From Octopus bimaculoides (taxonomy: Eukaryota), in assembly GCF_001194135.2 (NCBI RefSeq), contig NC_068981.1:41118417-41167952 (forward strand): 49,536 bases of DNA, given 5' to 3'. Position numbers and translations under genes: made by a program. Below, piece by piece: positions 1 to 48,126 of this stretch. Each line of letters begins with the position of its first letter. Within the stretch, counting starts at the first letter, position 1. A model generated the notes under the pieces. The model was given only the letters and a program-made list of their open reading frames with translations. It was not told the origin of the DNA and made no database searches.

Positions 1-291
1 AAATGAAACATACTTTATAAACTATAGCAATTTCCCTCCCCCTCCCTCCCTCTGCTGTTCACACACCCCTGCACACCCCATATTACACCACTAGGTTGCC
101 AAACATATTAGGAAAATAAGATTGGACTGAAACTTCACTAAGTCATCATCTTGCCTTAAAATTTGCTGTTTACATCATCATCATGTGAATATTTTTTTAT
201 ATCACTCTCTCATCACCTTTTTTATTATTTTGTTTATTTTCTCAATTTTTTTTTTTTTTCTACACATCATTTTGTCAAATTTGGACTGTAG

Positions 292-408
292 TTTGAAGAT
301 TTAAATGGTGAAAAGCATGAGCATTCCATTTCAAGTAGAATAAACTTGATTGATTTGGCTGGCAGTGAAAGACAGTCGACATCACAGTCTTCTGGGGAGA
401 GACTCCGT
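292..408 (+). CDS. KIF14: KIF14-like exon 1 in window (motor, switch II)
   Basis: tag|[39 protein letters not shown]|gtaagt; 117 nt, phase 0-0. Confidence 0.96.
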
Positions 409-3400
409 GTAAGTAAATCTACAGAATTCACTTTTTTAGATATTTTATCAAAAATCTAAACTTATTAATAATATTTCAAATGAGTATTAAAAATAAATGC
501 TTATTATTTGTGTGTGTATGTTTTGATTTCCAGCATCTGCTTAACACATTCCTGTTGAGATTGTGATTTCCAATCAGATATATTTTATTCTCGATTATTA
601 TTGCATCGATTTGGGCTATATATTTTCAAAAATCTTATAAGTATCATTTTCCCATCATTAATCAAATGATTTTGTTGAAACTTTTGCTTTAATTAATACT
701 GTCTTAACTTTATAACCTAAACCCAATCATTTTGAAAAAAATAAGCCATAAGATTTGTCAAATTGCTCTTTGTTATTACAATTTAAACTTGTTTTTGTTA
801 AATTTATGTCTACATATGATTTCTGTAAGAAATTAATGCAATGAGTCAATTGCACCTGGTACCATTTCTACATTTAAATTTTAATACCTAAAACATAATT
901 TTTTAATAAATACTTTTGTTTTTATTGCAGGAAGGTATTAATATCAACAAATCATTGATGACACTTGGTAAAGTTATTTGTTTACTTTCTGAGGTATCTT
1001 CTAATGCTAGCAAGAAGAAAAAGGTCTTCATCCCATACAGAGATTCTGTATTAACCTGGTAACTAATTTGTCTTATTTTAAATGTTAACATAAACTTTTA
1101 CATATTTCTTTAAAAACTAAGGTAGAATATTTGTAAACTCATTAAAACATGTGTGCATGCAGGGGTATAGACTTAAACAACATGTCTTTAGGGCCTCATC
1201 TTTACTTAGACAGATGGGTTTTCTCAAGCGCAGCAAATTACCAATCATATCAGTCCTTTGTCATATCCTCTGTTAAACTCAACATCCAGATGTGGTTCTT
1301 CATCATTTTGTCACATGTCTTCCTAGGTCTCCCTCTTCCACAGATTGCATCCACTTCTTTATGCAGCTGTCCTCAGACATATGCATCTCATGACCATGCC
1401 AGCACATTCTTCTTTCTTGCTCACTATGGTACCTCTTATGCTCAATTTTCTGAGTTATGAGGCAAAATCAGTAGTATATTGAGGGAAGAGGGAGGATATA
1501 CTCCTGAATATTGTTTAGCCATCTTGGATGGGTTGTTGATGCCAAATAGCAAAGAATCACTGAAGATCTGATCAATTAAGTAAATTGTGTGACTACATAC
1601 AAACCAAGATTGTATTCTAAATTTTCAATTACAATCTAATCCTTTGAAAATACATAATCTAGATTATAAATTGAATGGGATAAAAATGAATGGAATAATA
1701 ATAGAGAGTACAGGATAGAATGTGCAGTAGGGTTTCAAAGGTAACCATATGGTTGGACATATCTGGTTTACTGAAACTGTGAATTATCCTAAGCCTGGTA
1801 AAAATATTTGTGTGAAGGAAGTTGACTTAACAATTACAGCTTCTAAAACGACCAGCGCCACTACCTAGAGATGAGAGAGAGCTTCTGTATGGTCATTCAG
1901 TCTGCAAGAAATAACCAAATTTCCCTCAGATCACATCATACTTTCTTAAAAGCAAAAAAAAAAAAAAAAAAAAAAGAAAAACCACTTTAAAAGTCTCTAA
2001 TATTAGATGTAAAGTTGATATCCTTTCTTTTTTTAAGTAGAAAACATTGAATAAGATTCTTCTAGTTAACAGCTTATAATGGACATTATTTACATTTGAT
2101 GAATATTTGTCCTCATCTTGTTTAACACAATGTTTTGGCTGATATACCCTCCAGCCTTTATCAGGTGTCTTGGGGAAATTTCAAACTTGGGTTCTCATTC
2201 CTAAGGTACTTTCTGTCATCATTGCCGCCGCCGCCGTTCAGGTCACTGCCTGGAGTTGAACTCGGAATCTTGGGGTTAGTAGCCCGTGCACTTAACCACT
2301 ATGCCATATGCCCGTGGGCAATTATAGAGTGAATTTTAGTGCTTATAAATCTAATATTTTCCTATCTTTTCTTAATACCTGTTCCCATATGCTATTCATA
2401 TCTGCACTCGGTCTGCTTAGGAGGTTGTTGTATCCTAGCATATGTGTTGCTTCTTTTGGTTTTCGTATTTTCCATTGGTGTTCTCTGTCTATTATTTTAA
2501 CTTCATCCCACAGGGGGAGGTGGTCTCTGTTTTTCCATACATGATCAGCTATACCTGATTTATCAATATCTCCTCGTGTCACAGCTATGCGATGTTCGTC
2601 TACGCTTATTTTGAGCGGGCGGCATGTTTCGCCTTTGTATAACCTACCACAGCTGCATGGGATGGAGTAAACACAGATTTGGATTTTCCATGTGGCTGCT
2701 GTTGTGTTGTCGCTGGAACTGGCAGTGTCTTGTGTGATCAGTGGCCAGACCTTAAAAGGTCTGGAACCGAATGACCTTGAGATGAGGAAAAGTTAGATTT
2801 TTTTATAAGGAGTTGTAGGCTCAGCTGAGATAGAAAAACAGGCTGCCATACGTGACCTTATTTGAAGGCTGCGATTGGTTGGGTTGCATATTGGCGTGTG
2901 GTAGAGCAAGAGACAAATTGGGCCAATACCAACCAATCAGAGTAGTAGACACAACAGGGTCCAAAATGCGATCAGAGGTTAGCTGTTGTTTTCTTCGTTT
3001 GTATGTATGTATATATATAATAGAGAGGAGAGGAATTTCATTGAAGTGTACGCTACAAGCTAATTAATTACTATAGAAAAAGCATTAATCTTCAGATTTA
3101 AATGGTATATATAAGAGAAATTTTAGATTTTTATGTGTTAGAAAAATTCAGATATTTGTAATTTAATTTTTGTCATTTTCACTTTTTTTATTCTTTCAAC
3201 TTTAATCTTTTCATGAAGATAATTAAAAATACTTTTTAAAATGTTTGTCAGGTCAGTCATTTCATTAAAGAAAAGGGACCATATAGATACTCATAGTTTT
3301 AACAATTTAATTTCTTTATAATAATTTCAATTTTGTTTTCCTAGCATGTCCCACTTTCCCCAATTTTAAATCACTTTCGGCAAAAAGGAAGAAATATATT

Positions 3401-6400
3401 ATTAAAAATAATTTCACTGTCCCCTTCTTTACCAGAATCCCATACAGTCATGAGCTTTGTAATTCCTTTACCTATTGATGTTAAAATTTAAAAAGATAAG
3501 TCAAAATGTCTTTATTACTAATGAATTTCATATAATTATTCCTAGAGACTATTAAAAGAAAATTTGGGTGGGAATTCTCATACAACAATGCTTGCTACCA
3601 TAAGCCCTGCAAGTATTCATTAAGATGAACTTTTATTATACTGTCTGATATCATTTTAGTGTCACTGATCATATTTTCTTTCCAAAGGTTGTTAAAAGAA
3701 AGTCTTGGAGGGAATTCTCGAACAGCAATGCTTGCTACCATCAGCCCTGCTAATATTCACTGTGAAGAAACTCTAAGTACTCTCAGATATCCTTTTATTG
3801 TCATCACTTTTTTTTATTTTATCATCATTTCATTTGTTAGATGAGAAGTAACACCAAAAATATCAAAGCATCCTTAATTTCCAGTTTTAAATTATTATAT
3901 ATAATTAATTTTTCCTATAATTATTTGTATTTTTCTTGCAGTTAATGTTTTAGGGTTTAATTTTAATTTCATCAAATTAAAATCTACTTTGTTTTTTTCA
4001 GATCCTCATTCTATATTTTCTTTACAGTTTTACTCCTACCTTGCAAATTTCATTGTTTCATTTTAGATATACCATATATTTTTGAGTTGTACTCATTTGG
4101 CAAATGCATTGATGTGTGAGACAGTTTGCTGAATCTGAAGTGATTATGTTGTGGAAGAGTCCATTTAGTTATTTATGAAGACACAAAAATTGTTACATTC
4201 ACTTTAAGTTATTTCTTAATAGTAATGTCTATTTAAAAAAGAAATCTTATTGTCAGGTGGGAAGACAGTGTCCATGACTGTTTATAGGATCTTTGATGGG
4301 TGGGGAGATATCCTCAATCTAGAGACCTGGCTTGAATGCTTGCAAAGGAAGTGAACTCCACTAAAGTTACTCAAGGTACTAGGCACTGGTGTTAAATCAA
4401 GTGATGGATCAAGTCAAGAAATTTTGTTGCACTCCTGCAACCTGGTCACCGATACAATTCCAGTGCAGTGAAATTTTGTCAGAAGTTAATCAAGAATTTT
4501 TGACACTTCATAATAGACAGTAATAAATGAAAAGTAAATATGACAGCTTTGGGGTATTCGTAAGTGGTTAAATAACTCTTCTACAATGTAATCAAATTAT
4601 CAAAAAGAGTGGAAGCTGCAAGAATTTTTTTCAATTGAATTTATTGAGATTTTTTTAAAATGATAGTGGGGTTTTTTTTCTTGTTTTATTATATATTATA
4701 TTCTTTAATGTGTCTTAAATATGCTCAGCAAGCTAGCTGTATTGTGAATCGTGTCCGAATCAATGAAGATACAAAAAGTAAAAAAATTCAAGGTTAGAGA
4801 ATTTAGTTTTTTTAGCAGTTATTTTTAATAATTCTCATTTTTATACTTCAAAGTATTTATATTCCAGTGTTGTTGATTTTTGTATCTATCATCATCATCA
4901 TCATCTTTGTTTAATGTCCTCCTTCCATTCTGGCATGGATTGGATAGTTTGACAGGAGCTAGCTAGGCAGAAGACTGCACCAAACTTTTGTGTCTGTTTT
5001 GGTATGGTTTTTACTGCTGGATGCCCTTCTTAACACCAACCACCCTGCAGAGTTGGCTGAGTGCTTTTTACCTGGCACCAGCACAGGCAAGGTCAGTTTT
5101 GGTATGGCTTTTACAGCTGGATGCCCTTTCAAATGCCAACCACTTTACAGTGTGAAGTGAATGCTTTGTACCTGGCACCAGCACTGGCAGGGTCACCAAA
5201 TAACTTTGCAAGACAAGGAATCTTTGAGAGGGGAGGGGCATTGGAGGAGGTGATCTTGTGCCAGATGATAAAAAGTTAGAGTGTGACAGAGAGACAGAAA
5301 CAAATGTCTTGCTGTAGACAAGGTACATGGTAATCCAGCCAGGGAGAGAGTTAACAAGAAAGAGGGCAGAAACAAGTGTGCTGCTGTAAAGGAGATACAT
5401 GGTTACCTAGCTGAGAAGGAGTGAGGGAGAGAGATCAAGAATTGGTTAGAAACAAGATGGCAGTGAAGGGTATACTCACGATGTACAGGGATCAGAGCAT
5501 AAATGGGATGGTAGAGTAAGGAAGAAAGAGATAAATGGTGGCAGGTGCCATCAAGGTATTGCCAAGAAAGTGTGAGTGGGGGTGGGGGAATGTTGTGACT
5601 AGTGAGAACCTGGGTATATAGAGGGGGTGGGGAAAGCAACACTACAGTGAGCAGGGTAGTGAGGAATGGATTGGAGAGTGGGAGATAATCATAGTGTATG
5701 AAGAGGAAATGTGAGGAAGAGAAGAGATAGTTTGGGAGAGGAGATGTAATCTGATTTGTTGGGGTAGGGTAGGTGGAACACAACACTTCTAGAACTCATG
5801 TTCACTGATGTGGGTGGATCTTCTCTAGAAACTCTTATTGCCAGATATCTCAGTCCATTGTTATTTTCTCTGTGAGTCCCAACATCCTGAGATCAGTCCT
5901 CACCACTTCATCCCATGTCTTCTTGGGTCTCCCTCTTTCATAGGTACCATCCACTTTCATTTTTATATATTTAGTGATCTTCACATAAAGAACGATATAC
6001 TGTGCTTGTGAAGACCTGTCAAGCCAAGTGAAATTGTAGTCATGGCTGATGCTAGTGCTGTATGCCTGGCATGTAAAAAGCATCATTTGAGCCTCATGGA
6101 GACAGTGACAGGTGTCCAAGACCTTTGGCGATATACTGTGCTTGTGTAGACCTGTCAAGCCAAGTGAGACCGTAGTTGTGGCCAGTGACACCTGTGCTGG
6201 CAGCACGTAAAAACACCAACTACACTCTTGGAGTGGTTGGCATTAAGAAGCGCATCCAGCCATAGAAATCTTGCCAAATCAGATCAAAACCTGGTGCAGC
6301 TCCTCAACTGACCAGTTTTCAATCAAACTGGCCAACCCATGCTAGCATGGAAAACAGATGTTAAATGATGATGATGAATCCTATTTATGCATTGAAGAAT

Positions 6401-9400
6401 GTCAAATCTCGTTCAGAATTAATCCATGATTTAAAACATACACCTAAATTCTAAATTTCAGTCATTTCATAATTCATATTATAAGTATTTGCATAAAACT
6501 GTTTTTTTTTTTATTTGTCATAACGGTAAAGAAGAACAATGCCTATTTTGTGATATTTAGACTAATATAAGATTATTACTTTGTTTTCTGTTCACATGCA
6601 ATATCATCATTAATATACAGTGAATGTTTCTTAAATTCTATGTTCTTTGAAAATAGCTCAGCTTTATGTGTGTTTCAAGGCAACTCATCACTGATGAAAG
6701 TAATTGCATTTATGAAGATGACATTCCTTCAAATTCTTATTTTTATATTTCTCATCAAATCATCGTATGTAATTTGATATTTTGTAATCTCTTACAGAGC
6801 TTTTAGCTGAGATTGAAAGGCTAAAAAGACTCACTTCAAAAGGTAGAAATATTGAACATGAAATACGTTTGGCAGAAATTACTTCTTTACGTTCAGAATT
6901 AAGTGGTAAAGAAAAGGAACTGCAAAATTTAAAAAGGTTTGTTTAATTGTTAAAATTTTCATTTTTTACTTTAAATTATCAGCATCATTGTTTTAATGTT
7001 TATTTTAATAGAATACAGTTGATCTTCATTTTTTTATTTATTATTAAATGAATTGTGCATTTTAGAACTTGGGAAATAAAGCTAACTGAATCCGAGAAAA
7101 TGAAAAAAAAACAGCTTGATATACTTCAGGTATTTACTTTCGTTATATATACTTTTAATTTAAATGATTATTTTTAGATTTGGTAGTGTTTACATTTACT
7201 GTGTTTCCAAATGCTAAATTAAGATTTTCATGTCTAGATTGTTGTTGAGCAGGATGAGAAAGTAGTCTTAAGTTTTCATTGCAATTTTCATATGTTGTAC
7301 AATTTTTCTCGTTTACTATGTTCCTCATATTATCAATTAGGAAGCCTAGAAAGGAGTTAAGAGATATTTATGGTTTTGCTTATGATTGTTCACTGAATCC
7401 AATGTTAATCATATTTTCCTTTATTTACAAATCATTTGATGATTACACCCCAGATTTGTACAGCTTTAATTACAGCTGGAGCATGTAAAATGTTTAGTTT
7501 GAGAGGTCTGCAACTTTACTTGCTTCTCCATGTAGTACTAAAAGCATCTCTCTTCTAAGAACTCTATTAACCATTTCGTTACTGTATTTATTTTGAGATG
7601 CTCTGTGTTTCTTACAATTACTTAAAATATAACAAAGAATTTAATCAAATAACTTAGGTATTATTAAGCTAGTGTTAGGAACATAAATTGTGACTGGTTT
7701 GGTGGAAGATTTTAATTCAAAACTTATGGAAACAAGGCATTTGTACTCAGAGCCAGTTTCAGCTGGGTTGGTAACGAAAGGGTTAAAAGATGTTGGGCTT
7801 GTTTAATCTTGTCTCAGTTAATATGGGATGCAGCAGATAATGTTTGGGAGCATTGTTAGTTATCTGAACCAATGAGTGGTTATGTAAGCACGCGAGAAAT
7901 AGTTGATTATTTAAGGTTCAGAACTCTACTGTCACTGAGTACTGACAGCCAATAGAGTTGACTGTCAGTATTTGGTAATGGCCAAATGCAGCTAATTTTA
8001 GAGGTTAGATCCCATCTTCAGAAGCTTGATTTTATGCACTTGGCTTGTCAGGAGTGCTGCTGTAACCATCTCTGTATGTTTTTCTTCTTGGCATTATAAT
8101 GCAGGAGTGATTTACACCAAGGGAGATCTCATCTGAACTGAGACACAGGGAAGCAGTTCTTGTATATGTGAACAGTATTATTCTCATTATGTTGAGTAAC
8201 TTGGGATTTGTGTTGATTCACATAAAGCTGGAACTAGGGCAGTTATTAACTAGGTCAAGTGAGCAACTTAACATATATTAGAAAGGGCATCCAACCATAA
8301 GAACTCTACTAAAGAAGACACAGGTGCATGGTGCTATCATGTGACTCATTGGATCCTGTTGAACTTTGCAACTCATACCAGTATGGATGATAGACATTAA
8401 ATGATCATGGTAATGGTAGTGGCAATGACAGCAATAACCAAGACTCCTCTATAAATCACTGAAGGATAGAGCAGAGCTTGTTGTTTGTGAGGAGCTGATA
8501 AAAACAACATTTTAAAGGATGTTGTGACTATATAGCAGTTGGTGATTTCATTAGTTTCTTATTTTCCTATGTAACACTCCTTGAATAATCCTATAATTTG
8601 TTTCACCAGCCATTGGTTGTTGTTGTTATAGATTTGATAGTTTTATGCATTATTGGCTTTATTTTCAATTACTTTCAGAATTCTGGTATAATCATAAAAA
8701 TGGATAAAACGTTACCACATTTGGTAAATTTAAGTGAAGATCCTCAAATATCTGAAGTCTTGCTGTATTTGATCAAAGATGGAAACACCCATGTTGGACA
8801 CAGTTCTTCCGATTCTGTTTGTGATATTCAGTTAATAGGGGCCCTAATTTCAAAGAATCACTGGTTTGTAACACTCTTATTTGTTACTTAAGAAGTAATT
8901 GCTTTTTCATCATTATCATTATCATCTTCTTTCTTTATTCTTCTTTTTTTACTTTTGCCTTCTATCTTTCTTAATTCTGTGCTAATATAGAAATTCAGTA
9001 AGTTCAAGGTTCCAATGAGCATACTATTGTTATACTTTCCTTTGTGAAACCTCACTTTGTAAGGTCTTGTATTATAAATGTAATTATATGTCTTTCTGAT
9101 GTAGAATTTTTTTTTTTTTTTTTCACTTTGCGTGAGTGAATAGGGCTTTTCCACATCTGTACAGACTTAATTCTTGCAGCAGTCATGCTAATTTAATTGC
9201 TTCCAGTCTGTGTTGTATGCACTTTATACACGACAGTTCATAGTCACTAGAAAGTTCATCTTTATACAACATTGTGATAGATTCAGTAATCCTGCATTTC
9301 TAATTCACAATATATTTACCAGTTTCTTGTGAATTAGAATTGGTAAATAGACAGAATAATTTCTGTTAGGAGGGACGTGTTAACTTCTTTTACATATTAG

Positions 9401-12400
9401 TAGGCTGTGATTTTGAAACTGTTACAGTTATAATTTACTGAAAGAATATTCAGTAACTTAAACCAGAATAATACTCTATAGAACAATGTTCTCTGCCTCT
9501 TCTACCACAAAACTGAACTTGCAAAACATTAAAATCAATGTGTCCCATCCTTTTCATTTCCCCATCTTTGTGTTTATATTACAAAAAGTTCTTGGTATTC
9601 AAAAATGACTGGATTTATGACTAGCAGCCAGTTAGTCAAAGCAGCAGAAAATGAAAGAGCGAAATATATGTGAAAATTATGTATTTGTGTAATAGTGATG
9701 TGATTTCTTGAAATAGATTTATGGCAGAAAAATGCTTGCAGGTTAAGTTAATTAATTTTACATACTTGGAAATTTGATATTATATCAATTATTTTTAATG
9801 GATTACTTGTTTATAGCGTATTTATTAATAAAGATGGTGTAGTGACACTCTCTCCAGTTGGTAATGCTCTTTGCTATATCAATGGTGTATTGATTAAGGA
9901 ACCAACTATTCTTCAACATGTAAGTATTGATTTTATTTGGTTAGAATTCTTTCCATTATTTTATTTTCAAACAAGTTATTAAGTAAAGACTTCATATTTG
10001 TATGCTTTCGTTTACCTAGTTGGAAAATAGATAACACTTCTACTCAAGTGATATGAATTAGAGCATCTAATTAATAAAATATTACTCATATGCAAGAAAA
10101 TTCAAACTTACAGAAATGGCTTATCTTTATTTCTAAGGAAAAATGTACATAAACAAGCAGGAAAAAAGATCTTGTTCATTTAAATGACGTTGCATTGTGG
10201 TAGTAAGAGTTGGTTATTCAAATTTAGATATTTGAATACGCTTATAGTAGTCAGGTACACCAGTTCTATCAGTTTGCACCTTAATAACCCAGCTATCATG
10301 TTTATGTAGATATCTTTTGAATAAACAGGAAAATAATTCTTAACAAAATAGTCAAATATTATGTTGATAAAGACAAAACAAGGTAAGAGTAAATTTATTA
10401 GAATAACCATCTATTTCCATTGTTTGGTGTCCTTTTGAAAAGTTTTATAATTATAACTAATTATTCAAAAGAAAATAATTACAAAATACTGCAGTTAGCT
10501 TTATAAAATATAAATGTACAAATGTTGTTGATTTTGTTCAATCCCAAATCAACTCCACTGAAACAGACAAATGATCAAATGTGTACCATGTCTGATCATC
10601 CTGTCTTTTTAAGGGTATTAGGGATTTCATTATCTAGTGCATCTTTTACTATTTTAAAATAGTTTGGTGTGTTTAAAGGGAGAATTAGCTGATATCTCTT
10701 ACAGGTCAGATGACAAAGTAGAGGATCTTTACATTCTGTACTATTCACAAACCAATGAAATGTACTTTAACAAATATTGACCAGTTGATCCTACTGGTCT
10801 CAGAGGCCCTGGACTGAACTCTTCCTCAAAATCACTTCCCCTCCCACCCCCAAAGTGTTTAATTGTATCTTTCCCCTTACAGCATATGGTATGAACTCTT
10901 ATGTTTCTGTAAGCACACTTAGTGTTGCTATGGGTATACTAGGCTTGAATAGTCAATGAAGAAATTGCTACATGGTCACTCAGTTTGCTAGAGATTGCAA
11001 CCAAATTTCCTTCAAATCACACATTGTTGTATTTCGAAAAATAGAGGAGGGAGACGTTGAATAATGAGGTTGGGGTACACTTTACTTTGATGCTTTTGAT
11101 TATAGGTCAGCTCAGTCAGGGCTGAATCAGAGCTAAACAAGGCATGATCAAAGTATTAGGAGACTTGAAATTAGAGTAGTGTATTCTAGTTTTTTATTCT
11201 TGGTAGGGTTCATTGAAACACGATGTACCCTATTTGTATTGAAAGATGATCAGATATTAATACAATGTTATAATTACACTAATGTTGGTAAAACAATTAT
11301 TCTTTATTTTTTTCTGCCTTTCAAATTTTGAATGATCACCCAGCATTCATATACTGGTAGTCACTGATAAAATGAAGCAAAAGACAAAAATGTTGAAAAA
11401 TAGATTTTAAAACTGTAATTTGCGTTCTAATTATTACATTGATGTTTTATATGTAAGGTTGTGAATTTTATATACTATACGTACTCCATGTGAAATTATT
11501 GCTAGGGTTTAAGATATTCTGATGAAGGACAATGAAACTAAATGAAGTTAAATTACAATTAGGTTAATTTTTGTTTTATAAAGCAAAAATGTATCATTTT
11601 TTTTTTTAATCTGTTTTGAAATTTCTTTCTCTAGGGAGACAGAGTTATATTAGGAGGAAATCACTATTTCCGGTAAGTGACCATTGGTTTTTGTACTGTT
11701 AAAATAATATCCTTGTTTACTTTTTTTGTTTTATCGGATTAGTAAAGCCATTAAAGCGTTGGACAAAATGCCTTGCAGTTTTTCTTTCAGCTTTATATGT
11801 CTGGAGTCCAAATACTGCTACAGTCAATTTGTCTTCCCCTAAATTCATTAACTGTAAAAGTGTTTTGCATGGACTGGCTCTTGTGCGGGTGGCACATAAG
11901 ACACCATTTCGAGCGTGGCCGTTTTCGTGCGGGTGACACGTAAAAGCACCCACTACACTCTCTGAGTGGTTGGCGTTAGGAAGGGCATCCAGCCGTAGAA
12001 ACTCTGCCAAATTAGATTGGAGCCTGGTGTAGCCATCCGGTTGCACCAGTCCTCTGTCAAATCGTCCAACCCATGCTAGCATGGGAAGCAGACGTTAAAC
12101 GATGATGATGATAACAAATTAAAACTTACCACTAAATCTATAAAACCATTGAGATGATCCACATAGAATTTGATGATGATGATAATAATACGAATAAAGA
12201 TTTCTTAAAGAAGCACAAGGCCTTGAATTTGGGGGAGGGTAAATTGACCTTAGTAGTATTTAAACTGAGTGATGGGAGTGTGAGGTCAGTCAGAGAAGCA
12301 GAGTTCACTGTAGTAGTGATAGGAATGTTAGGGAGAGAGCAACAATATACCTCTGGGCAGCTGTGTTGGTGAGTGACTTCATGATAGTCAGTTGAATAGC

Positions 12401-15400
12401 ATTCCACACAAAGCTCTTACAACTAACTTCGATTCACATATATCAGAATTTTCTCAGTGCTATATTAATTCCAGACACCTTTCAATCTTTAGTATTACTT
12501 TTGCTTCAACTCTTAGGAGGAAGAATATAATCAATTAAAATTTTTTTTTAGTACATGATTTATTTAAGTGGATTTTATTTTTAGAAGATAGCCAGAAGAG
12601 GAAGAGTAGTGTTCATAAGCTCTGTGGTCCCTTGTTTCCCCATCAGCCATAAAATTGATGCAATTAATAGTAAATGAATTCCAGCAGATTAGGGAAAGAA
12701 GCAAATGGTAAAGAGTTTAGAACTGAGTAAGGGTATTGTGTAAGAAGAAGGGATTTGAATGAAGAGGTTTTGTTGTGTGCTAGTTCAGAAGAGCCATTAT
12801 TATATATAGAAGTGTTAGATGTGCAGAGGTAACAGCTTGTTTATGAATTATTGTTGTAACTTGTTGGTAACTGATTCTTTATTGGTGATATTCTTTTGAA
12901 TGTGTAGCAGCAGCATCATTGTCCCATAGATATAAGCAATATGCTAATGTGGGTCAACATGAGCTTTGTAAAGGGTCAGCAAAAGATCAGTTAGTCTATT
13001 TCTTGAGTCTAGAGGAATACTAGTCTCTAATACACATTTAGCAATGTTATATATGTGTGTGTGTGTTACCTTGAAAGATAATTATAGATTATGAGTTTTA
13101 GCAAATGTAGTGGTTTTGAAGATTTTGGTTATAGTGTTCATAAGTAGAGATGCAGTTTTCTAGTGATGTGTAGTGATTGTGTAACTCAAAATCTTCTGTT
13201 TAATCAAGTATAAGGAATGAGGACTAGTCACAAAAGGGATGGAACCACTTAAGATTTTTCAAGCTGGGAAACTGCACTTCTTGACAAATCATTTAAAAAA
13301 ACTTTTACACATTATTTACTTACTTTAAACAATTAAACTAATTGAAATAATTTTACCAATTAAACCAATTGAATAATTTCTAAAAATATTTTTCAGATTT
13401 ATGTATCCTATGAAATCATCTGATTCAAAAGAAAATAGTAAATCTGCTTGTAAAGAAGTGAGAGATTTCGATTTTGCCCACAAGGAATTGATACGAGTAC
13501 AAGAATTAAGGTTTGAGATTTCATTTTTAGTTTATATACTAATTAAAACATTAATAGCACACTAATTAAAGTTGTTAATAATAGTACCAGTCTTTCTTTC
13601 TCCTTAGGAAAAAAATGAATTAGTCCTTTGATAGAAAAGATTTTTAATAAGTTTAATTGTAATCAGAAAGCACAGAGAAAGAGAGACTGAAATTTTATAT
13701 TTTGACTTAAATAAAAAGTCTTTCAATTTAGTCTCTAAAGTATGGAAGTAGCCCTAGATAAGCATCCTGTAATGGGGCTCTGGTTCAGGAGTTCCAGGGC
13801 TTTGAGGAGTGTGGGACCACCTTTTAGTCACTGTTGTTTTCAGGTCTGTTCTGACCTGGAGTAATAGCACGTCAGGGTCCCAGCTATGGGTTACTTGCAA
13901 GTCAGTCACGCAGATAGAGCTCTTTAGCCTATTGGGGTAACCAATCTAGTGGAAGGAAAACTCTGATTCCAAAACTCTTCTGTCTTGCGGCTATACTCAG
14001 CCATGGGAAAAACTATGGGAGTAAACCTTGAAGAAAAATTGGGAGTTGGAGCCCATGAGGCAGGTCGACATTGTCTACAACCTCATTCTGGCAACTCCTG
14101 TGACAGCACTGGTGCCAAATTGTAATGGCCATCCTGTTCCTTTGGATCCATCAGTGATGGAGATGGGTGGGATATGCTGCATGGGCAACAACTTGTCCTT
14201 CATATCTTTCTGCCCAGGCTGGTATCCTTTTGAATCCCCAATATTGGAGAGATAGAACTGGCAGTCATAGACAAAACTGTTTCAGTAGGGTGGACAACTA
14301 GGGCTTTCATCCATTGTCATTAATGACAGAATAGTGATATCATGGCATATCTTACCTTTTATATAATGATTATAAGGTAAGTATATTCGTATGTAACCAA
14401 AACTTTAATCAACCTTTTTAACCAAACTAAAATGACAGTAAAACCCTAAAAGTTCTTTATTTAAATAAAAAGATTGCATTTATTGTTCATTTTGAATACT
14501 AAAATGTGTTTACTTAACACCCACAGCTCACTCTCTACAGTTCTGATTCATTGCATTATAGAAATATCGACTTCTATCTTGTCTCTAATTTTTGTTTCAG
14601 TCCTTCCATACATTTTGAAAGCTCAGGTATATGTACAGTATAGGATCACTTATTTCCTCTTAGTGTCTTTCTCACTACTGACATTAACAGTCACTATTGC
14701 CATTTTCAATATCCTAAGAGAGCAATTCAAATATATTTTCAGAATTATTTATTGTTGATCAAGAAATATACATCAATGCACCTTTCTATTATTAACATCT
14801 AAATATAAAAAATTACATGCACAAAATTGCAGGCCTCTCCAGGGGCCACACTAGATCTAAATCTGGCCCTGGTGTGAACAGTCTTTCAGAGGTAATGTTT
14901 TACAGCTATATGCCCTTCATGTTGTCAACCCTTTTAGGCACCTGTTAAGGTAATTACTTATTACCTTAGCCATTTGTTTTTAATTTGATGTAATTAAAAT
15001 CAAAAATTTGTGGTTATATTTTCAGACTTGCACAACAGTTGGAAGATACTAAAAATATGGTTCAAAAGGAATTATATCAAAAAATTAATGAAGAAAAGCA
15101 AAATGGTTTTTATAATGACAATCAACTTATACAAAATGGCGTGAGTATTTTCAATTGTAAATTGTTGAATATGGAGTCAACTTTATCTTTTATACATTAA
15201 ATAAACATTTAGCCCTGCTGCAAATAGACTCTGTTAAATCAATGAACATTCTGAAGAATGAATAAAGAACAACTCAATTAGTTTCATCTTTCTTCAGCTT
15301 GGCAGGAGTGTTTACTTCATTTGATCTACAGAGAGTGAGTGTGTGTAGCTTACAACTACCTATGAAGGATACTATAAACCACAAGTACTGCTTTTGCTCA

Positions 15401-16595
15401 TTTGGATATTGGTACTTTTATTGGCTGCACAGATTAACTAAAGTACATTGTTAGACTTGTTGTAAATAAATTTACATGCATATATTAAAATAAACATACA
15501 TGAAGTGTAGCACAGTAACACTCAATGTATGTAATTTCAGGACCCAGGGGGTCTGTAACAGCATTACAGACTCCCTGGGCAAATCAATGCATTATCAGTT
15601 AGTGTTACAAAGACCGAGACACTGGTCCTCCAGAAAGTCTTCCTTGTGCACTCTGCATGTTAGTGGAACATTACTGAGACAAGTGGAGATGTTTAAATAT
15701 TTCAGGTGCTGGCACAGTAATACACCAACATCATAAGAGGAGAGATTGATTAAAAAGCCAAACTTGCTATCTTCAATTCAGTTTTTGTGCCTATTCACAC
15801 CTGTGGTCATGAATGTTGCATAATGACCAAAAGAGTATGATTGCAAATGCAAACAACCAAAATGGGGGTTCCTCTGAAGGAAATCTCTTGTAATGTTGCA
15901 TAACTCAGAATCAAGGAGTTTCTCTGCATTGAGAAGTCACAACTCTGATGTTATGGACATAAGATTAGAATGTTGCAGAAAAAAAAAGACAGATTCTTCA
16001 AGCTCAGTCAACTAGCAGGAGACCTATGGGTTGAACAAGAATGAAATAGTTGGATAATAGCCATAGTCTTAGTCAGCTTTGGGAATCCAGCTGGAAAGTA
16101 ATGATTGTTGCTTCTGATAGGACCCAATAGAGGAGGTGTCTGAGGACTCAAGCGCCATGATCCTTGCAAGAATAGTGGGTGGAGATGGATCTGGACCATA
16201 CCTCAACAGAAGTGGATAATGCAAATTTTGCTTGACCAAGAGGGCAAGGATCCTAAAATATTTGTTTGATCTGGGGGCCTTCTTAAATTCAAATAATGGC
16301 TTCCCCACTTGCTGACTAGTGAACAGAAAATATAAACTGACCCTTTTCAGAAACAACTGGTACTGCTCAAAGGAAGATAACTTCATCTTGTCCAAAAGGG
16401 ATTTTCACTTCTAAGAATTTCGTTTCAGGGTTTTGTTTTTCACCACTATGTTGACCAAGACTGTGTTCTTCTGTAAGTAAACAGGTTGTGTGCCTCCAGC
16501 CAGCAGGTTTGATTAGTTTCCTATGATGCTAAGAGCAATAACAGATGTGAACCCAATGATAACTTTCTGACTGGCCATAATGGCTACATAAAATA

Positions 16596-16642
<47 letters not shown>

Positions 16643-19600
16643 TATGTGTGTGTGTGTGTGCTAAGTAAGCATACAAAATTATTGCAGCAGTTTTAATGAC
16701 ACATAGCACTAAAGCACCTCATGTTATGAATGTTCAGATCTAGCAACCCAAGTTTATTTAAATATGAAATAATTTATGGAAATGCAAATTTAATGTGATG
16801 ATTCCTTAAATACAACCTTCTTTGTAAAAATTTTCCTTGATCTTAATAACCTAGCATCTTCACATTCTTCAATCTATAATTTCAAGCCAAAAAATTAGTT
16901 AGCTGAATTCTATATTGCATCTAATAACTTGGCTGTCTTTTACATTCTGTTAGTTGTTTGAAATATGATTTCTTGTTTTTTTTTTCTTTCTTCCTTTCAT
17001 TTGTTAGTTCAACACCCTGACCAGTGTAACACCTCTTACTTCAACTCACTCTCACTTTAATACTCCCATTCTCACTTGCTCTTTCTCTGTAGTTTGCTAC
17101 TTTTGCCAAGGTGATAAAACATCATCCTTCAACTCTTTTTCATTTCTATTCTACTCTGTCACTCTCTCTGTTTGTCATTTGATAACTTCCTGCTTTCCCC
17201 CGCCATTGGAAACAGAAAAAAAAGAAAACATGTGACAGGCTTTTATATATTGATAATATTGCCTGTTTAATGAATCACATTTTTCTTCTATTTGTGTTGT
17301 TACTCAATTTTAATGTCATAGTCCTCTTTATGTATAAATTTTAAAATATTAAAGTTGTTATTATTTGTAACATCAGAAAGTATTTTGTTTAATGGTACAT
17401 TTTATTCTGTAATACTGAATATATCTATAGTATTTTTATCCATTGTTTTATATATAGTCCAGATTAAAACACTTAATCTTTCTATACAATATATTTGAGG
17501 ATTAAAAAGAAAAAAAGGTACCAATTGAACTAATTTTAGTCATCTTATGCTGGGATTTCATCAATGACTGAGTCCCCTATTTTGACTATTCACATAGATA
17601 TTGCTTGTAAAGCCACTTTTACTAAGATTAATATAATGTGTTAGCAGTTATTTTATTTTTTACTTATTTCAGCCATTGGACTCTGGTCTGGCTGGGGTAT
17701 CACTTTGAACAATTAACCCCGAGTACTTACTTTTTCAATCTATTCCTTATTGTATCAGTTTCTTCTGTTGAACTGCTAAGTTACAAGAGCTTAAACAAAC
17801 CAACACTGGCTGTTAAGCACTGTGGAGTCACACACACATGCAATTGGCTTCCACACAGTTTCCATCTACCAGATTCACTCACAGGGCATTGGTCAGCCCA
17901 AGGCTATAGTAGAAGACACTTAACCAAGGTGCCACATGCCAAAACCATATAGATACAAACTGAGCTTCTTAATCACACAGCCATCCAAAACATCTAATGA
18001 AATATTCCTGTTTTAATTGTTTTTGTAATTCAATCCAAATATTAGGTATTAGTTTTCTTGTGACATTATTTTATCAAGTAACTATTTATAATAATGATAA
18101 TAATGAAATTATTGTATACAGTGCTCAGGTGCACTACAGCTTGTCAAAAGTGTGCATAAAGCATATGCAGTATTGTACAAATGTCTGGAAAGTGAACAGT
18201 GTATGAGTCAGATACATGCTTGTGTGTGTATGGAGAGGAGAAAATCAGGTATAGTGATTATGAAACTTTTATATTTAAACAAATTTTTTTTTTCTTGATC
18301 TCCAGGATCGACCAGAAAATACACTCTTAAAGGAACTCGAAAAAGCAAAAGGTCATGCTGAAGAAAATTTAAAACAACTTTCATTATATCAGAATGAAAC
18401 TGAGCTTAAATCAAAATCATTGTCAATTTCATCTGAGTCTAGTAATTCAAGCTCTTTCGATTCATATAATCAAGCCATGTTGATGATAAATTCATTATCA
18501 GCAATTGTTAATGATGCTCATGGGAAGAGTCAATTTTGTGTTGAAAATTTAAAGGAGAGACAATGTAACTTGGAATCTAATCAGTTCAACACACCATTAT
18601 CTGCAAAAAGAAAACAAAAGCTAACTATTGGTTCCTTTGGATTGTACCACACATATTTGGCAATATGTGAGGCCAATGCAATTTGTTGGCATTTAAAGAA
18701 AAACATCGTAAATATTAATTTAATTAATTTTTTTTTAACCGTTTCATATCATTTTTCTTTTGTTTAAGTATCATTTTGTTTGGTGTACTTATTCATTTTA
18801 TGTTCACTTTTTCTATCTTTACTTGGGTTAGCTGGGTACATTATGGGGCATTGTTTTACAGCTGCATACCCTTCTCATCACTAACCCTTACCTGCTTTTG
18901 AAATAAGGAATTGTTTTTGGTCACTCATCTATGAAGATGCAAAACAATTGAATAAGTTTTTGACAAAAGTGATAAGAAATCCACTTGAAGTGACTGTTGT
19001 AAGACACAAATGTAAACAAACACAGACATGCATGCATACACACATACACACAGCAGGCTTCTTTCAGATTCGTCTATCAAATTCACTTACAAGACTTTGA
19101 TCATCCTGGGGCTATAGTAGAAGATACTTGCCTAAAATGTTTAGTGGAATTGAACCTGAAACTATATGGTTGGGGAGAGAACTTAATTATACAACCATGC
19201 CTTTACCTAATAGCTTTGAATATCTGATCCATATATCATATCTAAATAAGCACATATATATACATTCATATGTATATGCACGTTTGTCTATGCACATATT
19301 TATAGCAGTATGAATAATATGAGTAATTGTAAATGCTGAGAATTGAAAGCAAATTCGTTTTGTAACTGAATCTGCATTTAAACTGTAAAGAACGCATTTG
19401 TTTCATACAATCATTACAGCAGTTGGATTTCTTTGAAGACTCATGTTTTGCTCAAGCTACTGTTCTTTTCATGTCAAAAGAAGATAGTATCTACAGTAAT
19501 GTGATCAAGTCAGAAAATCCATTAAGACTGGCTGAATTCACTTCAGAGATTGTCATTATCAACTATTTCGGATATTGAAATAGATAATTTAAAGACAACA

Positions 19601-22600
19601 GCAAAATTGTATGTTCTTCCACACTTTTACTGGTACCATGGAACTAATGTTGCATCTCCAAAAACAGATAATATTTTTCCACTTCTCAAGTTATCAGTAG
19701 AGTGTTAAATTTTTCCACCATGACTGCACATATGGTAGTAAACTTGTAGGAAATCGATCACATCAGCATTTCTCACTTTTTAGAAGTATACTATATTTTT
19801 GTAGTGATGGACAAAGGTAGAATTAATAACATTAGTGATGGTACAATGTACATGATACCTAGTTGCTTCCATACTATTGCATACATATATTTGCCAACTT
19901 AAACATTACTTTCAAATTGAGGTCAAATTCTGTACATTTATTGAGAGATTTCATGTCATTGCTGTTTTTTATATTAATGTTGTGTTTGCATAGCATTCTT
20001 TCCTAATTCTGATTGCAACCAACAGAAGTTTCTCGACAAGATTAGCTCTTGTGGATTGTCACTAGGAAAAGAACAGAATTGAATTATGATAGAACGAATC
20101 CATTGTGCTTTCAATGGACATTGTAGTGTATATGCATGGTGATTGCTGGTTGAAAAATGTACATAAACATCAGGAATCTAACAGGTGCTTCTCACAGTTA
20201 TGTTATTACACATATCTTCAACTGGTCTAGGAAAGAGCAGTTAATCTGAATTCAAATTACAATAATCCAAGAGTTAACTTTGATTGCCAAGTGGTTAGAT
20301 AAAATCTGAGTTAAAACCAAGCCATCTACAAACAGAAAGGCCCTGAAGTCAAAAGTGCAATGGATGGTTCTTGGAAAATATGTGAACTCTTAAATTCTAG
20401 GACCTGAGAGTGTTTAAAGTCTAAAAGAGTTGTACAAGTAAAATAAACCAAAAATAAAGAAATTTGTTTGCTATGTAGTTGGAATTGTTATAGACCAGGT
20501 GTATGGGAGACACATCTGTGCTTGGTATTTGTGGCTCTCCAATCATCTCACAATCTGACATACAACACTCCATGCATCTGTACAGAAAATGTCAATTTGA
20601 TGGTGGGAGTGAGCTAATGTACAGCACAAACATTTGATCACTAAACAAATCATCTATGCAGGTTGTTCAGCGAGAAATTGTTGAACCTTCATCTGGATGT
20701 GTGTAGGTATATGTACAGAATAGTAATTTTTTCAGTTTCAATCTACTGAAACCACTCACAAACTTTTGGACAATAGTAGAAGACATTTGCTCAAGGTGCC
20801 ATATAGTAGGACTGAACATGAAACCACATGGTTGGGAAGCAAACTAAATTCATACAAGACTAAAGTAGTAAATTGTTTGATACAATATATGTTTCCATTA
20901 AAAAAAGTTTTTAAATGTTTTCTTTTAAACCAATTAAATTTGTTCTTTACAGGTATTTTCAAGAGAAGATTATTTTGATGATGAAAACAATCTAAAAATG
21001 CTCATAAAATGTAGCTTAACTGATATGAAGATCTGTACGTTTTGGTCCTTTGAAGTGTTTATGAATAAGTTGCACTTACTGAGAGATGTATATCAGGTAA
21101 TATGGAGATTTATAAAATTTTTATTACCTTTCAAGTTAAGATTTTCATTTAATTAAATTTGAATAGCTTAAATATGACAAAAAGCTATATATATTGCATT
21201 CTTCTTTTAACTAGACCGGTGATAATAATATTGAAGAAATCATTGCTGATGAAAACAACTGGAAGAAAGATGACAACTTTGAGTTAACTGACATATCTTC
21301 TCCAGAAAAGTTAGTTCCTTTCATTATTTTTTCTGAAGAAAACAGGAGGCAGTAAATTAAGGACAATCTTTTTGTCACACTTCAATAACAATGATAAATT
21401 ACTCCATTTAGTTTGCTAATATTTGATGCTCTCATATATGAATCAATGACTCAACTTCATTCTCAAAGTAATTTTAATTTTGTTCACCAATTATTGTATA
21501 TTTTTAATATTTACTTCAGTAAATATAGCAAATTCTGTGCTTTACTAATGAGACCAAAACATGTCTACAATTGTGTCCCCTACTTATTGAAAAAACAATA
21601 TTAGTCATCATCATCATTTAGCATCTGGTTTGACTGTATGGTTTCTATAGCTGGATGACTTCCTAATGCCAACCACTCCAAGAGTGTAATGTGTGCTTTT
21701 TACATGCCATTGGCATGGGTGCTTTTATGTGACTTTGGCATTGGCCATGATTATAAGTTCGCTTGGCTTCTAAAGCACAGCATATTGCCAAAGGTCCCGG
21801 TCACTTGTTATCACCTCCATGAGGACCAACGCTCAATGATCATGCTTTACCACCTCCTCCCAGGTCTTCTTGGGGCTGTCTCTACCATAAGTTCCCTCCA
21901 CAGTTAATGACCAGCACTTCTTTATGCAGCTGTCTTTGTCCATACGCATCATCTCTCTTGCACACCACATCTGATGCCTCTTATGCCCAATTTTGCTCTC
22001 AAGACACCTATACTCTGTTGTATATGCACATTGACATTGCACATCCAGCGAAGCATGCTAGCTTCATTTCTTTCAAGACTTTGCATGTCCTCTGCAATCA
22101 TAGCCCATGTTTCACTGCCGTGTAGCATGCCTGTCCACACACACAGACATCATACAATCTGTCTTTCACTCTGAATGAGAGGCCCTTTGTTACCAACAAA
22201 GGTAGAAGCTCTCTCTTTTCCCAGCCTGTTCTTATTTGGGCAGTTACACTCTTGGAGCATCCACCTCCACTCCTGACTTGGTCACCTAGATAATGAATTC
22301 TATCAACTACTTCTAGGTATCCCCACTGGCACTTGACGGAGTCTATTTTCTGTACATTTCTTGTACCTGTACATCTGCCACGCACAAAGACTATATTCCC
22401 TGTTAACCACCCTCTGATATTGCTGCACCTCTTATGTGCCCATAGCTTGCATTGGGTACATCTTATGGAGTTTCTACATATTGAGCAGGGCCATTTACCA
22501 AAAGGGATTTGTGATTTGTCCGCTTTCCTACTTACTAAGACTTTAGCTTTTACTAAATTAACGTTAAGGCCTTTGATTCTAGACCTTGCTTCCACACCTG

Positions 22601-25600
22601 CATTTTCGTAACTGCCTTATTATCTGTAGTGGAGGCGCAATGGCCCATTGGTTAGGGCAGTGGACTCGCGGTCATAGGATTGCGGTTTCGATTCCCAGAC
22701 TGGGCGTTGTGAGTGTTTATTGAGCAAAAACACCTAAAGCTCCACAAGGCTCCGGCAGGGGATGGCGGCGAACCCTGCTGTACTCTTTCACCACAACTTT
22801 CTCTCACTCTTTCTTCCTGTTTCTGTTGTACCTGTATTTCAAAGGGCCAACTTTGTCACACTGAATATCCCTGAGAACTACGTTAAGGGTACACGTGTCT
22901 GTGAAATGCTCAACCACTTGCACGTTAATCGGATCAACTGGAACCCTCGATGTCGTAAGCGACGGAGTACCAACAACAACATATTATCTGTAGTTAGCTT
23001 TTTAATGTTCTTTGCATGAAATATTTTAACACTAACTTAACTATTATTTTACACTTAGATTATGTTTCTGAGTAATTTATTCTGTAACTAATATTTTCCA
23101 TATGTTTATTGATATTTCTTTTGAAATATGTATTCTTTAGTTGTGGTCTACCTGTTGTAATTGCTTCACCAGAAAAATCTTTGATGGTCATGCGTCGATG
23201 TAGCTTACCAAATCATATACCGAAAAGATCAAGAATAAGTAAGAAAATTTTGTTAATTACTAAACCATTTTAACAGTTTTTAAACATAATTGAATAGTGA
23301 ATTCTTGCTACATTAAACAAAATGCCATTAACATTTTCTATAAATGAAGATGAAGTGTTTACATTTGTTTAAAGATACAATATTGACTGAGAATCTACAA
23401 GTGTATTTTGTGATGCAGTATAGAGAATCATCAAGTAAAGACAGCATAACTGCTTTCTTTCAAAAAGATTGGACAAATATTTCTCAAAACCCTTTTGTAT
23501 ATCTATATCTGTTTGGACATCTGCTTTAAATATGAAGAACAGGAGCAATAGTACATAATTATTCAAAAGCAATTGGTCATGTTTTAATTATTCTTTCATA
23601 AATATTGAGCTAGTAATTTACATTACAGTTTCATGAAAGAGTGTAACCTTCTAAATGCCTAACATCTACTGATATCAACATACAAAGTATGGAAAATTTC
23701 CATTGAGAAATGAACCAAAGTTGGAATTACATGGGAGATCCATCTTCCAAGCTGGTAAGCCAGAGGACTGCACCAAACTCCAATGTCTGCTTTGGCATGT
23801 TTTTTATGGCTGGATACCCTTCCTAATTCCAACCACTTTACAGAGTGGACTGGGTGCTTTTTATGTGGCATCAGCAGTGGCTAGGTCTGCTTTGGTGTGG
23901 TTTTTTTACAGCTGGATGCCCTTCCCAATACTAACTACTCTACAGAGGAAGATTTAAATTCTTTGAAAACATTTCTAAAAAGAAAAAGAACCAAAAAAAG
24001 ATCATTAATATATGTTCTATTATTATTGAAATGACTCCAAACACTATGTAAATTTTTTAATGTATTTTATTCTGGAATAGAAATACCTTGCAGTGTTTAT
24101 TTCAGTTGTCTGCATTCTGAGTTCAAATCCTGCTTAAGTTTAACTTTGGCTTTCATCCCTCTGGGCTTCTGAACAAGATGTCTTGTGGTATTTGTTCTGG
24201 CCCTCCATTCTTAGTTCAGATCTTCTGTGGCTTACATGGATAGTAGATTTAATCTCTAACTCAGTTTAACACCACCACTTGGCCCTTTGGAACTTTCAGC
24301 AAAGTTCACTCTGTTGCAAGCATTCACACCAGACTCCAGTTTGATGATACCTTCCTCTCAACTGTGTTGAGGGTTCTGAAAAGATCCTTTTTATCAACTA
24401 AACAAAATTTTTTAATGAAACAGTTAAACAATATGAATCAAGGAAAGTTCTGTTAGTTGTGTGGTCTGCAAGAAAATGTGGATAGAATGTTTATCAATTC
24501 AATCAACTCTGTTCAAGTAAATTGGCGAATGCTTAAGATCATCCTATGAGCTATGAAACCTATCAGTCAGCTCTGGAGTCATGTGGCATATTTTGCTATA
24601 CAATGACTGAATAAATGGAATCAAAATTTTTATTAGTGCAGTCAACAGACTAACTGAATGAGTATTCATAACCATTTTTGTTACAACAAACAAAAATATT
24701 ATGTTACTGTGCTGTTGTGCCTTATCAAAATATAATGTCTTATGTATAATATTTCATATTTATTTACTAAAACATCAGCATTAAACTAAATTTCTATTAA
24801 ACCTTGTATGATAAGTCTTAAGTTATTAAAAGTTACTTTATTTTGCTCACTTTTTTTAATGACTTGTAAATATCAGAATGTAGCAAACCAGATCAAATCT
24901 GCTTAACAGCCAGTTTTCCTTCCAAATTGTAAACACTATAAAATAAGGTGGTATAAAAGACAGTGAAGTATGGTCTGTCCAGATGGTTGTGATCTGTTAT
25001 GGACTATCCTCAAGCATATTCCTGACAAGAATTAACAGTAAGATCTAAATAAAGTTTTTGAATACTATAAATGAAATAGTCAAGGTCTTTTTTTTTTTTT
25101 NNNNNNNNNNNNNNNNNNNNNNNNNNNNNNNNNNNNNNNNNNNNNNNNNNNNNNNNNNNNNNNNNNNNNNNNNNNNNNNNNNNNNNNNNNNNNNNNNNNN
25201 NNNNNNNNNNNNNNNNNNNNNNNNNNNNNNNNNNNNNNNNNNNNNNNNNNNNNNNNNNNNNNNNNNNNNNNNNNNNTTTTTTATTATTAATGAGAGATCT
25301 GTTTTGTATACTACTGCTTTTAAATATTTAAAATCACTTATGAAAAAAACATTTTATTTAAAATTGTTTCTCTTATTGGTTTTCTTTGTGCTACTACTTT
25401 ATTTTTTTAACTATTATTCATCAGAGTATAAAAATCATTCAAATGAAAAGGGATGCTTTTTTTAAAATATATATGTTTAAATTTTCTCAACAGAAAATAT
25501 TTCTAAGAACACATTGTCATCAGTGTTAAGTAAAATCATAGAAGTGTCACCATTAAAGTTACCTCAAGGTAATACAGGTGAGTAGATTTTCTTCATAACT

Positions 25601-41445: not shown

Positions 41446-41644
41446 TCATCATCATCAACGTTTAACGTCCGCTTTCCATGCTAGCATGGGTTGGACGATT
41501 TGACTGAGGACTGGTGAAACCGGATGGCAACACCAGGCTCCAATCTGATTTGGCAGAGTTTCTACAGCTGGATACCCTTCCTAATGCCAACCACTCCGAG
41601 AGTGTAGTGGGTGCTTTTACATGCCACCAGCACGAGGGCCAGTG
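41446..41644 (-). mobile_element. Young (GAT)n-tailed RTE-3'UTR repeat, truncated by a gap
   Basis: (CAT)n..CCATGCTAGCATGG..GTGCTTTTACATGCCACCAGCACG. Confidence 0.9.
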
Positions 41645-41732
41645 NNNNNNNNNNNNNNNNNNNNNNNNNNNNNNNNNNNNNNNNNNNNNNNNNNNNNNNN
41701 NNNNNNNNNNNNNNNNNNNNNNNNNNNNNNNN
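41645..41732. other. Assembly gap (88 N)
   Basis: N run between two near-identical repeat tails. Confidence 1.
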
Positions 41733-47855: not shown

Positions 47856-48126
47856 CATCATCATCGTTTAATGTCCGCTTTCCATGCTAGCATGGGTTGG
47901 ACGATTTGACTGAGGACTGGTGAAACCGGATGGCAACACCAGGCTCCAATCTAATTTGGCAGAGTTTCTACAGCTGGATGCCCTTCCTAACGCCAACCAC
48001 TCAGAGAGTGTAGTGGGTGCTTTTACGTGTCACCCGCATGAAAACGGCCACGCTCGAAATGGTGTCTTTTATGTGCCACCCGCACAAGAGCCAGTCCAGG
48101 GGCACCGGCAACGATCTCGCTCGAAA
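47856..48126 (-). mobile_element. Young (GAT)n-tailed RTE-3'UTR repeat
   Basis: Reverse complement differs from 45297-45455 at 6 of about 160 positions by hand count. Confidence 0.93.

Follow-up and report, generated by a model that had tools for sequence, protein, structure and literature searches.

The stretch of DNA analysed here (the window) comprises 49,536 nucleotides (nt) of Octopus bimaculoides contig NC_068981.1 (positions 41,118,417 to 41,167,952 of the forward strand) and carries the 3' two-thirds of a gene for KIF14 (kinesin-3 family member 14), the cytokinesis motor of cell division. The RefSeq protein XP_014783784.1 (P0488) can be threaded through the window from its residue 279 onwards at 100% identity, as far as the stop codon at 38510, and the window gene is therefore identified by its sequence as KIF14 of this mollusc, the identity proposed in a preliminary description of the same DNA. 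In this study, we describe an intron within the motor domain that starts with AT, ends with AA, splits the R codon of the kinesin motif LRYA and is very probably an A-type U12 intron, that is, one removed by the minor spliceosome. The features concerned are as follows.

291..38510, + strand: KIF14 gene, 3' two-thirds, residue 279 up to the stop, in 23 exons separated by 22 introns (threading of XP_014783784.1 and tblastn hits)
3688..3786, + strand: motor-domain exon C, (W) plus 33 protein letters plus (AG), ending in phase 2; preceded by the GT-AG intron 1059-3687
3787..4718, + strand: putative U12-type (minor-spliceosome) intron with AT-AA termini, 932 nt, the sole non-GT-AG intron among the 22
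3787..3795, + strand: U12-type 5' splice site ATATCCTTT, 0 mismatches to [AG]TATCCTT
4701..4709, + strand: U12-type branch-point sequence TTCTTTAAT; the branch A (4707 or 4708) precedes the 3' end by 10-11 nt
4717..4718, + strand: non-canonical 3' terminal dinucleotide AA, needed for the frame and for LRYA
4719..4792, + strand: motor-domain exon D, (R) plus 24 protein letters; followed by the GT-AG intron 4793-6797

Protein threading assigned GT-AG termini to 21 of the 22 window introns, including those flanking the upstream exons DLAGSE (291-408) and EGININKSL...YRDSVLTW (931-1058). Exon C ends at 3786 with ...ACTCTCAG (codons GAA ACT CTA AGT ACT CTC AG), the intron starts at 3787 with ATATCCTTTT and ends at 4718 with ...GTGTCTTAA, and the next exon opens A TAT GCT CAG CAA GCT, giving a predicted spliced junction of ...ACTCTAAGTACTCTCAG/ATATGCTCAGCAAGCTAGC. 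The 3786/4719 join brings together 33 and 24 protein letters that align without a gap to the motor domain of mouse KIF14 (PDB 6wwi, E=2e-17), LSTLRYAQQA of the octopus facing LSTLRYATQA of the mouse; KIF14 motors were the best PDB matches to the window peptide. The motif LRYA, in helix alpha-6, is invariant in kinesins (kept in 469 of the 490 sequences retrieved) and is restored by this join only. The preliminary description had argued that AT-AA ends are required for LRYA, which the alignment bears out, and the coordinates, donor, branch sequence and ...TTAA end that it gave were all found as written.

The tetranucleotide ATAT stands on both sides of the intron, and five registers of the boundary can consequently be written: AT-AA, TA-AA, AT-AT, TC-TA and CC-AT. 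None of the five is canonical, and AT-AA alone starts on the U12 donor. No AC lies near the 3' end of the intron. The next AG downstream (4727-4728) lies 20 nt past the branch A; splicing there would throw the reading out of frame, with a TGA stop only a few codons further on.

U12 signals were scored by counting mismatches, and U2-type signals with a small position weight matrix (PWM) trained on the 21 U2-type introns of the gene itself. The other 21 donors carry 3-6 mismatches to [AG]TATCCTT, and each of these introns has at least 3 mismatches at the donor and at the branch signal. The branch candidate TCTTTAAT (4702-4709) differs from TCCTTAAC at two positions, both C to T, and its second A lies 10 nt before the last intron base. 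The motif RTATCCTT is not rare by itself, with seven occurrences found against 4.5 expected on the two strands of the AT-rich window (2 x 49.5 kb). Its occurrence on the exact base where protein homology stops has a chance of about 4.5e-5 per position, and a branch match with no more than 2 mismatches to TCCTTAAC placed 9-13 nt upstream is found at 2.3% of window positions. There is no distinct polypyrimidine tract, only TGTGTCTTAA being present between the branch site and the exon. Scored as a U2 acceptor, the 3' end of the intron reached -3.2, against a minimum of 1.3 among the 21 real acceptors, and the 3787/4718 junction as a U2-type site falls below every genuine site of the gene. An Rfam scan of the window gave no match. 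Two further ATATCCTT sites on the + strand were considered as starts of a second U12 intron and rejected: the one at 11707 lies 34 nt inside a GT-AG intron with the donor CCG/GTAAGT at 11673, and the one at 2018 lies inside the GT-AG intron 1059-3687.

The orthologous site was compared in O. vulgaris, Argonauta, Solemya, Saccostrea, Haliotis, Lymnaea, Ruditapes, Lingula, Owenia, Branchiostoma and Sorex. The sites found were as follows, with coordinates in the respective loci.

O. vulgaris (L003 23943-24851): CTCAG/ATATCCTTTTATTG at the 5' end, TTCTTTAATGTGCCTTAA/ATATGCT at the 3' end; AT-AA
Argonauta hians (L004 17461-18648): CTAAG/ATATCCTTTTTTGT at the 5' end, ATCCTTTAACACTTGTTAA/ATATGCC at the 3' end; AT-AA
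Solemya velum (L010 39945-41678): CTCAG/ATATCCTTATC...GTCCTTAATTGTGTCCAA/ATATGCC; AT-AA U12 intron
Saccostrea cucullata (L006 9338-9550): CTCAG/ATATCCTTAC...TTTTTCTTAACAAAGTTCAC/ATATGCC; AT-AC U12 intron, 213 nt
Haliotis rufescens (L005 14504-18494): CTCAG/GTCAGATTG...CTTGTCTCCCCAG/ATACGCC; U2-like GT-AG intron at the identical site
Lymnaea stagnalis and Ruditapes philippinarum: no intron at the LR/YA position
Lingula anatina, Owenia fusiformis, Branchiostoma and Sorex araneus: no intron at the LR/YA position

The donor is identical through ATATCCTT in O. vulgaris, Argonauta, Solemya and Saccostrea. The branch site keeps its spacing in Argonauta (ATCCTTTAAC) and Solemya (GTCCTTAAT), and that of Saccostrea (TTCTTAAC) lies about 10 nt from the intron end. 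MAFFT alignment of the Octopus and Argonauta introns found the interiors unalignable, while both introns share their opening 9 nt, the branch site at its 10-nt spacing and the TTAA end. The Haliotis intron runs from GTCAGA to CTCCCCAG. The proteins of Lottia gigantea, Sinanodonta woodiana and M. gigas (K1RN18) run on as LRYPF, in which YPF corresponds to TATCCTTT, indicating the same donor in these species. The U12 interpretation put forward in the preliminary description is therefore upheld, by a donor and branch at the right spacing and by orthologous U12 introns in Saccostrea and Solemya. Its suggestion that the position might hold a U12 intron in other KIF14 genes as well held true for these two molluscs but not for the only vertebrate examined, Sorex, which lacks the intron.

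Two intronless Logan contigs of about 5 kb (P0383 and P0389) encode proteins of about 1500 amino acids (aa) that are identical to the Crassostrea gigas protein over the stretch and read LRYAKQA. We take these contigs to be spliced transcripts and, on that understanding, the orthologous oyster intron is removed exactly at LR/YA.

Two side observations were made during this comparison. The Logan contig P0131 has a KIF14-like open reading frame (ORF) that runs on as ...SLSTLRYVGCYHS..., which fits AG/GTATGTGGG, a predicted U2-type GT intron of matching position and phase; no intron is present there in the contig's close relatives P0122, P0126 and P0129. In Lingula, the exon LLKESLGG...IIR occurs twice, in identical copies about 2.3 kb apart (L007 7002-7172 and 9269-9439), and the MetaClust protein P0242 is duplicated internally in the same way; the assembly may have doubled the exon, or the tandem repeat may be real.

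Public annotations treat the junction in different ways. In RefSeq, both the O. bimaculoides and the O. sinensis protein have LRYAQQA, the product of the AT-AA junction. Two in-frame GT-AG pairs overlap it.

3777..4732, + strand: in-frame GT-AG pseudo-intron of the UniRef model for O. bimaculoides, with an equivalent in the O. vulgaris model; deletes STLRYAQQA
3800..4728, + strand: in-frame GT-AG alternative; gives RYPFIQA

The models A0A0L8G5V4 (O. bimaculoides) and CAI9714843.1 (O. vulgaris) read CEETL-T-SCIV, Argonauta hians GAB1597550.1 reads LRYPFLSSCIV through GT17475-AG18662 (L004), Solemya velum ScPMuIL_011624 is mis-spliced to RYPYLNRQTGFQD-ARSIVN, and M. gigas K1RN18 is mis-spliced to RYPFIARAIVN. 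The models for Lottia (XP_009062894.1) and Sinanodonta (KAL3870517.1) are truncated and continue into the intron as LRYPF. At least five deposited KIF14 models thus carry a wrong junction, in which LRYA of helix alpha-6 is removed or corrupted, because the pipelines allowed only GT-AG. Modelling or aligning such mis-annotated KIF14 motors would mislead, and the RefSeq form is the correct one. The preliminary description had foreseen mis-splicing by gene finders at GT(3800)-AG(4728). That pair exists, is in frame and gives RYPFIQA as stated, and mis-splicing was indeed found in the two Octopus models, Argonauta, Solemya and M. gigas; the pair used in Octopus, however, was GT3777-AG4732, and the NCBI model was correct.

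The use of GT-AG pairs in three deposited annotations (UniRef O. bimaculoides, O. vulgaris and Argonauta), together with the in-frame position of both pairs, raises the question of whether one of them (3777-4732 or 3800-4728) is the true, U2-type intron and the U12-like motifs are coincidental. We consider this very unlikely. The three annotations are mutually inconsistent and are contradicted by the RefSeq models, both pairs delete or replace a motif that nearly all retrieved kinesins keep, and the cryptic GT donors 3777 and 3800 and AG acceptors 4728 and 4732 all score below the 21 real U2-type sites of the gene by PWM. Exons C and D of O. bimaculoides and Argonauta differ in 25 codons, 23 of them synonymously and 2 non-synonymously; the four differences falling in coding bits that the GT-AG models would make intronic (ACT/ACA, CTC/CTA, GCT/GCC and CAG/CAA) are all synonymous in the AT-AA frame. 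Moreover, the orthologous oyster intron is AT-AC, and the presumed oyster transcripts contain LRYA.

Removal of the AT-AA intron by the major (U2-dependent) spliceosome was also weighed. U2-type AT-AC introns have U1-like donors (ATAAGT), and the intron described here has instead a perfect U12 donor, a U12 branch at 10 nt and neither a polypyrimidine tract nor an AG, besides scoring as a U2 site below all real sites of the gene. Although U2-dependent AT-AC introns exist (Wu & Krainer 1997, as cited in PMC3584512) and 85 major AT-AC-like introns have been noted (PMC8280824), such a route is highly improbable in this case.

The terminal AA differs from AC by one base and the oyster orthologue is AT-AC, so that an AT-AC intron could in principle be hidden behind a wrong base call, a fault of the assembly or a rare allele; this caveat of the preliminary description can be regarded as virtually excluded, since ...TTAA/ATATGC is common to three independent octopod assemblies (O. 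bimaculoides, O. vulgaris and Argonauta hians) and Solemya velum reads ...CCAA/ATATGC.

Immediately upstream of exon C lies a further feature that bears on the age of the intron.

3552..3664, + strand: degenerate tandem duplicate of exon C together with ~17 nt from the start of the U12 intron; identity to the original (3692-3803) is 79%

The copy includes the acceptor region, contains an in-frame TAA and has a donor decayed to GATATCATTTTAG. It is present in O. vulgaris too (L003 23705-23791) and was not detected in the Argonauta locus, and it therefore arose in the Octopus lineage when the intron was already in place; since the copy carries the first ~17 nt of the intron, the 5' end of the intron predates the duplication. 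A role for the copy as a mutually exclusive exon was rejected in view of the in-frame TAA in both Octopus species and the decayed donor. The idea that the 932 nt were recently inserted (as a transposon or 'introner') into a decaying copy of the gene, with ATAT as the target-site duplication, might draw on the ATAT at both ends, the degenerate exon copy and weakly repeat-like parts of the interior, but has next to no probability: the gene is intact over 23 exons, the intron is shared at the same site with bivalves and gastropods and hence ancient, the exon-side ATAT is forced by the codons AG/A TAT (R, Y) and the intron-side one by the U12 consensus, and the tandem copy with the first ~17 nt of the intron is already 21% diverged, so that a target-site duplication or 'introner' origin of the ATAT was ruled out.

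Some points nevertheless weigh against the U12 assignment. Its signals were judged by mismatch counts and a small self-trained U2 PWM only, the branch site is two mismatches off the consensus, and the branch-to-3' distance of 10-11 nt lies at the short edge of the published 11-13 nt optimum (PMC3584512). The RefSeq models possibly rest partly on protein homology rather than on RNA-seq, and the two in-frame GT-AG pairs might serve as low-level cryptic sites. The present data show the sequence signals, how far they are conserved, the U12 introns of the orthologues and the need of correct protein models for this junction, whereas the action of the minor spliceosome on 3787-4718 and its efficiency are inferred.

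In the mechanism that we propose, the U11/U12 di-snRNP (small nuclear ribonucleoprotein) would recognise ATATCCTTT and the branch site together, with U6atac acting later on the donor, and U12 small nuclear RNA would pair with TTCTTTAAT. Both C-to-U departures in the branch site would keep pairing with U12 as G.U wobbles. Choice of the 3' site would depend mainly on its closeness to the branch adenosine (10-11 nt) rather than on an AG or a polypyrimidine tract, and a terminal A would for this reason be tolerated in place of C. U12 splicing with non-canonical termini has been shown experimentally, with an optimal distance of 11-13 nt from branch to 3' splice site (PMC3584512), and AU-AA termini were put to experimental test by Dietrich et al. 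(2005; as cited in PMC3584512 and PMC8280824).

The distribution of the intron traces it back to the shared ancestor of cephalopods, bivalves and gastropods, or earlier. Its subsequent history can be read, from the sequences compared, as retention or acquisition of AT-AA in octopods and Solemya, AT-AC in oysters, a U2-like GT-AG intron in Haliotis and loss in Lymnaea and Ruditapes. With the current sampling, an AA-ending ancestor requires one change of terminus and an AC-ending ancestor two. We tentatively suggest, as a possibility that falls somewhat short of even likelihood, that AT-AA is ancestral since the cephalopod/bivalve ancestor, oysters having changed to AC, and, separately, that the U12 intron is a rare gain on the mollusc stem. 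The cephalopod/bivalve common ancestor dates to the early Cambrian. A stem gain is possible because the site is uninterrupted in Lingula, Owenia, amphioxus and the shrew; such a gain and loss in all four outgroups may both fit the sampling. If either the AA-ancestral or the stem-gain reading is true, the site provides a natural series for the evolution of terminal nucleotides and intron class. At this one site, a single phylum shows the intron kept with AT-AA ends, kept with AT-AC ends, converted to a U2-like GT-AG intron and lost, which makes it a compact test case for models of minor-intron evolution.

The octopus KIF14 AT-AA intron belongs to an already known intron type, and its junction is already correct in RefSeq. 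The preliminary description had called AT-AA a rare variant; it is uncommon, yet it is the most frequent non-canonical type of minor intron in animals and plants, with a share of 1.117% among the orthologous minor introns of animals (PMC10639083 and its supplementary table). Sheth et al. (2006, PMC1557818) counted 3 human, 4 mouse and 1 Arabidopsis AT-AA cases, and molluscs, Octopus sinensis in particular, have minor introns (PMC10639083). Like the octopus intron, those of RASGRP4 (human and mouse) and MSH3 (AT-AA in human) combine a U12 donor and branch with a terminal A for C, and the change of subtype between human MSH3 (AT-AA) and mouse Msh3 (AT-AC) (PMC1557818, tables 2-3) parallels that between octopods or Solemya and the oyster. 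The octopus case differs from these in host gene and lineage, and in that its AT-AA ends are shared as far as a protobranch bivalve. The oyster KIF14 intron (Saccostrea) has the same position, phase and donor ATATCCTT, and differs in its AC end and shorter length (213 nt).

The CENATAC-dependent A-type (AT-AN) minor introns are of the same terminal class, the octopus one lying in a gene of mitosis and cytokinesis; in human cells, splicing of A-type introns is less efficient, and cell-cycle regulators are over-represented among the genes that carry them (PMC8280824). The preliminary description likewise gave, as background, that U12 splicing is often rate-limiting for cell-cycle genes. By analogy, molluscan KIF14 might be regulated through its minor intron. 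Mammalian KIF14 has no intron here, as judged from the shrew orthologue. Conversion of U12 to U2 introns and intron loss have been described (Burge et al. 1998; Lin et al. 2010, PMC2831892; PMC10639083) and are matched by Haliotis and by Lymnaea and Ruditapes, respectively; in contrast to the earlier cases, every fate is found here at one site in one phylum. No paper treating KIF14 together with U12 or minor introns was found in the literature searched.

Protein searches with 57- and 139-aa queries retrieved nothing longer than about 1.75 times the query; the matches were fragments, none from a cephalopod. Full-length octopod proteins were reached by a search of cluster representatives, which matched the full-length, 90% identical KIF14 of Argonauta hians, and by using the latter as a query, which recovered KIF14 of both O. 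bimaculoides and O. vulgaris. XP_014783784.1 (O. bimaculoides) and XP_029645137.1 (O. sinensis) are the RefSeq members of the octopod KIF14 clusters. The octopod proteins contain PF00225, PF16796, PF16183 and PF00498, their kinesin motor standing ahead of the Kinesin_assoc and FHA domains, and carry the name KIF14 at NCBI. Octopod KIF14 (P0243, P0381 and P0382) is about 200 aa shorter than other full-length mollusc models (1258-1296 aa vs ~1380-1685 aa). PF23313 (4HB_KIF14) has no recorded match in the octopod proteins and is present in every other full-length mollusc orthologue listed.

Runs of N, marking assembly gaps, were observed at 25101-25276 and 26992-27001 inside KIF14 introns and at 41645-41732 downstream of the gene. 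A dispersed short repeat with the core ...GGATGCCCTTCYTAACACCAACCACCC..., probably a SINE-like element (short interspersed nuclear element), occurs on both strands, in introns and in the downstream region, at ~74-81% identity. Its copies are located as follows.

4941-5200: dispersed repeat, with a 100-bp tandem at 4992-5195
near 11927-12011, 21636-21709, 23750-23965 and 26536-26617: dispersed repeat
near 29110-29225, 41549-41633, 41840-41924, 45265-45368 and 47955-48038: further copies of the dispersed repeat

The intronic ORFs at 5850-6206 and 22098-22595, both on the - strand, may represent the tails of retrotransposon proteins, which they resemble by eye.

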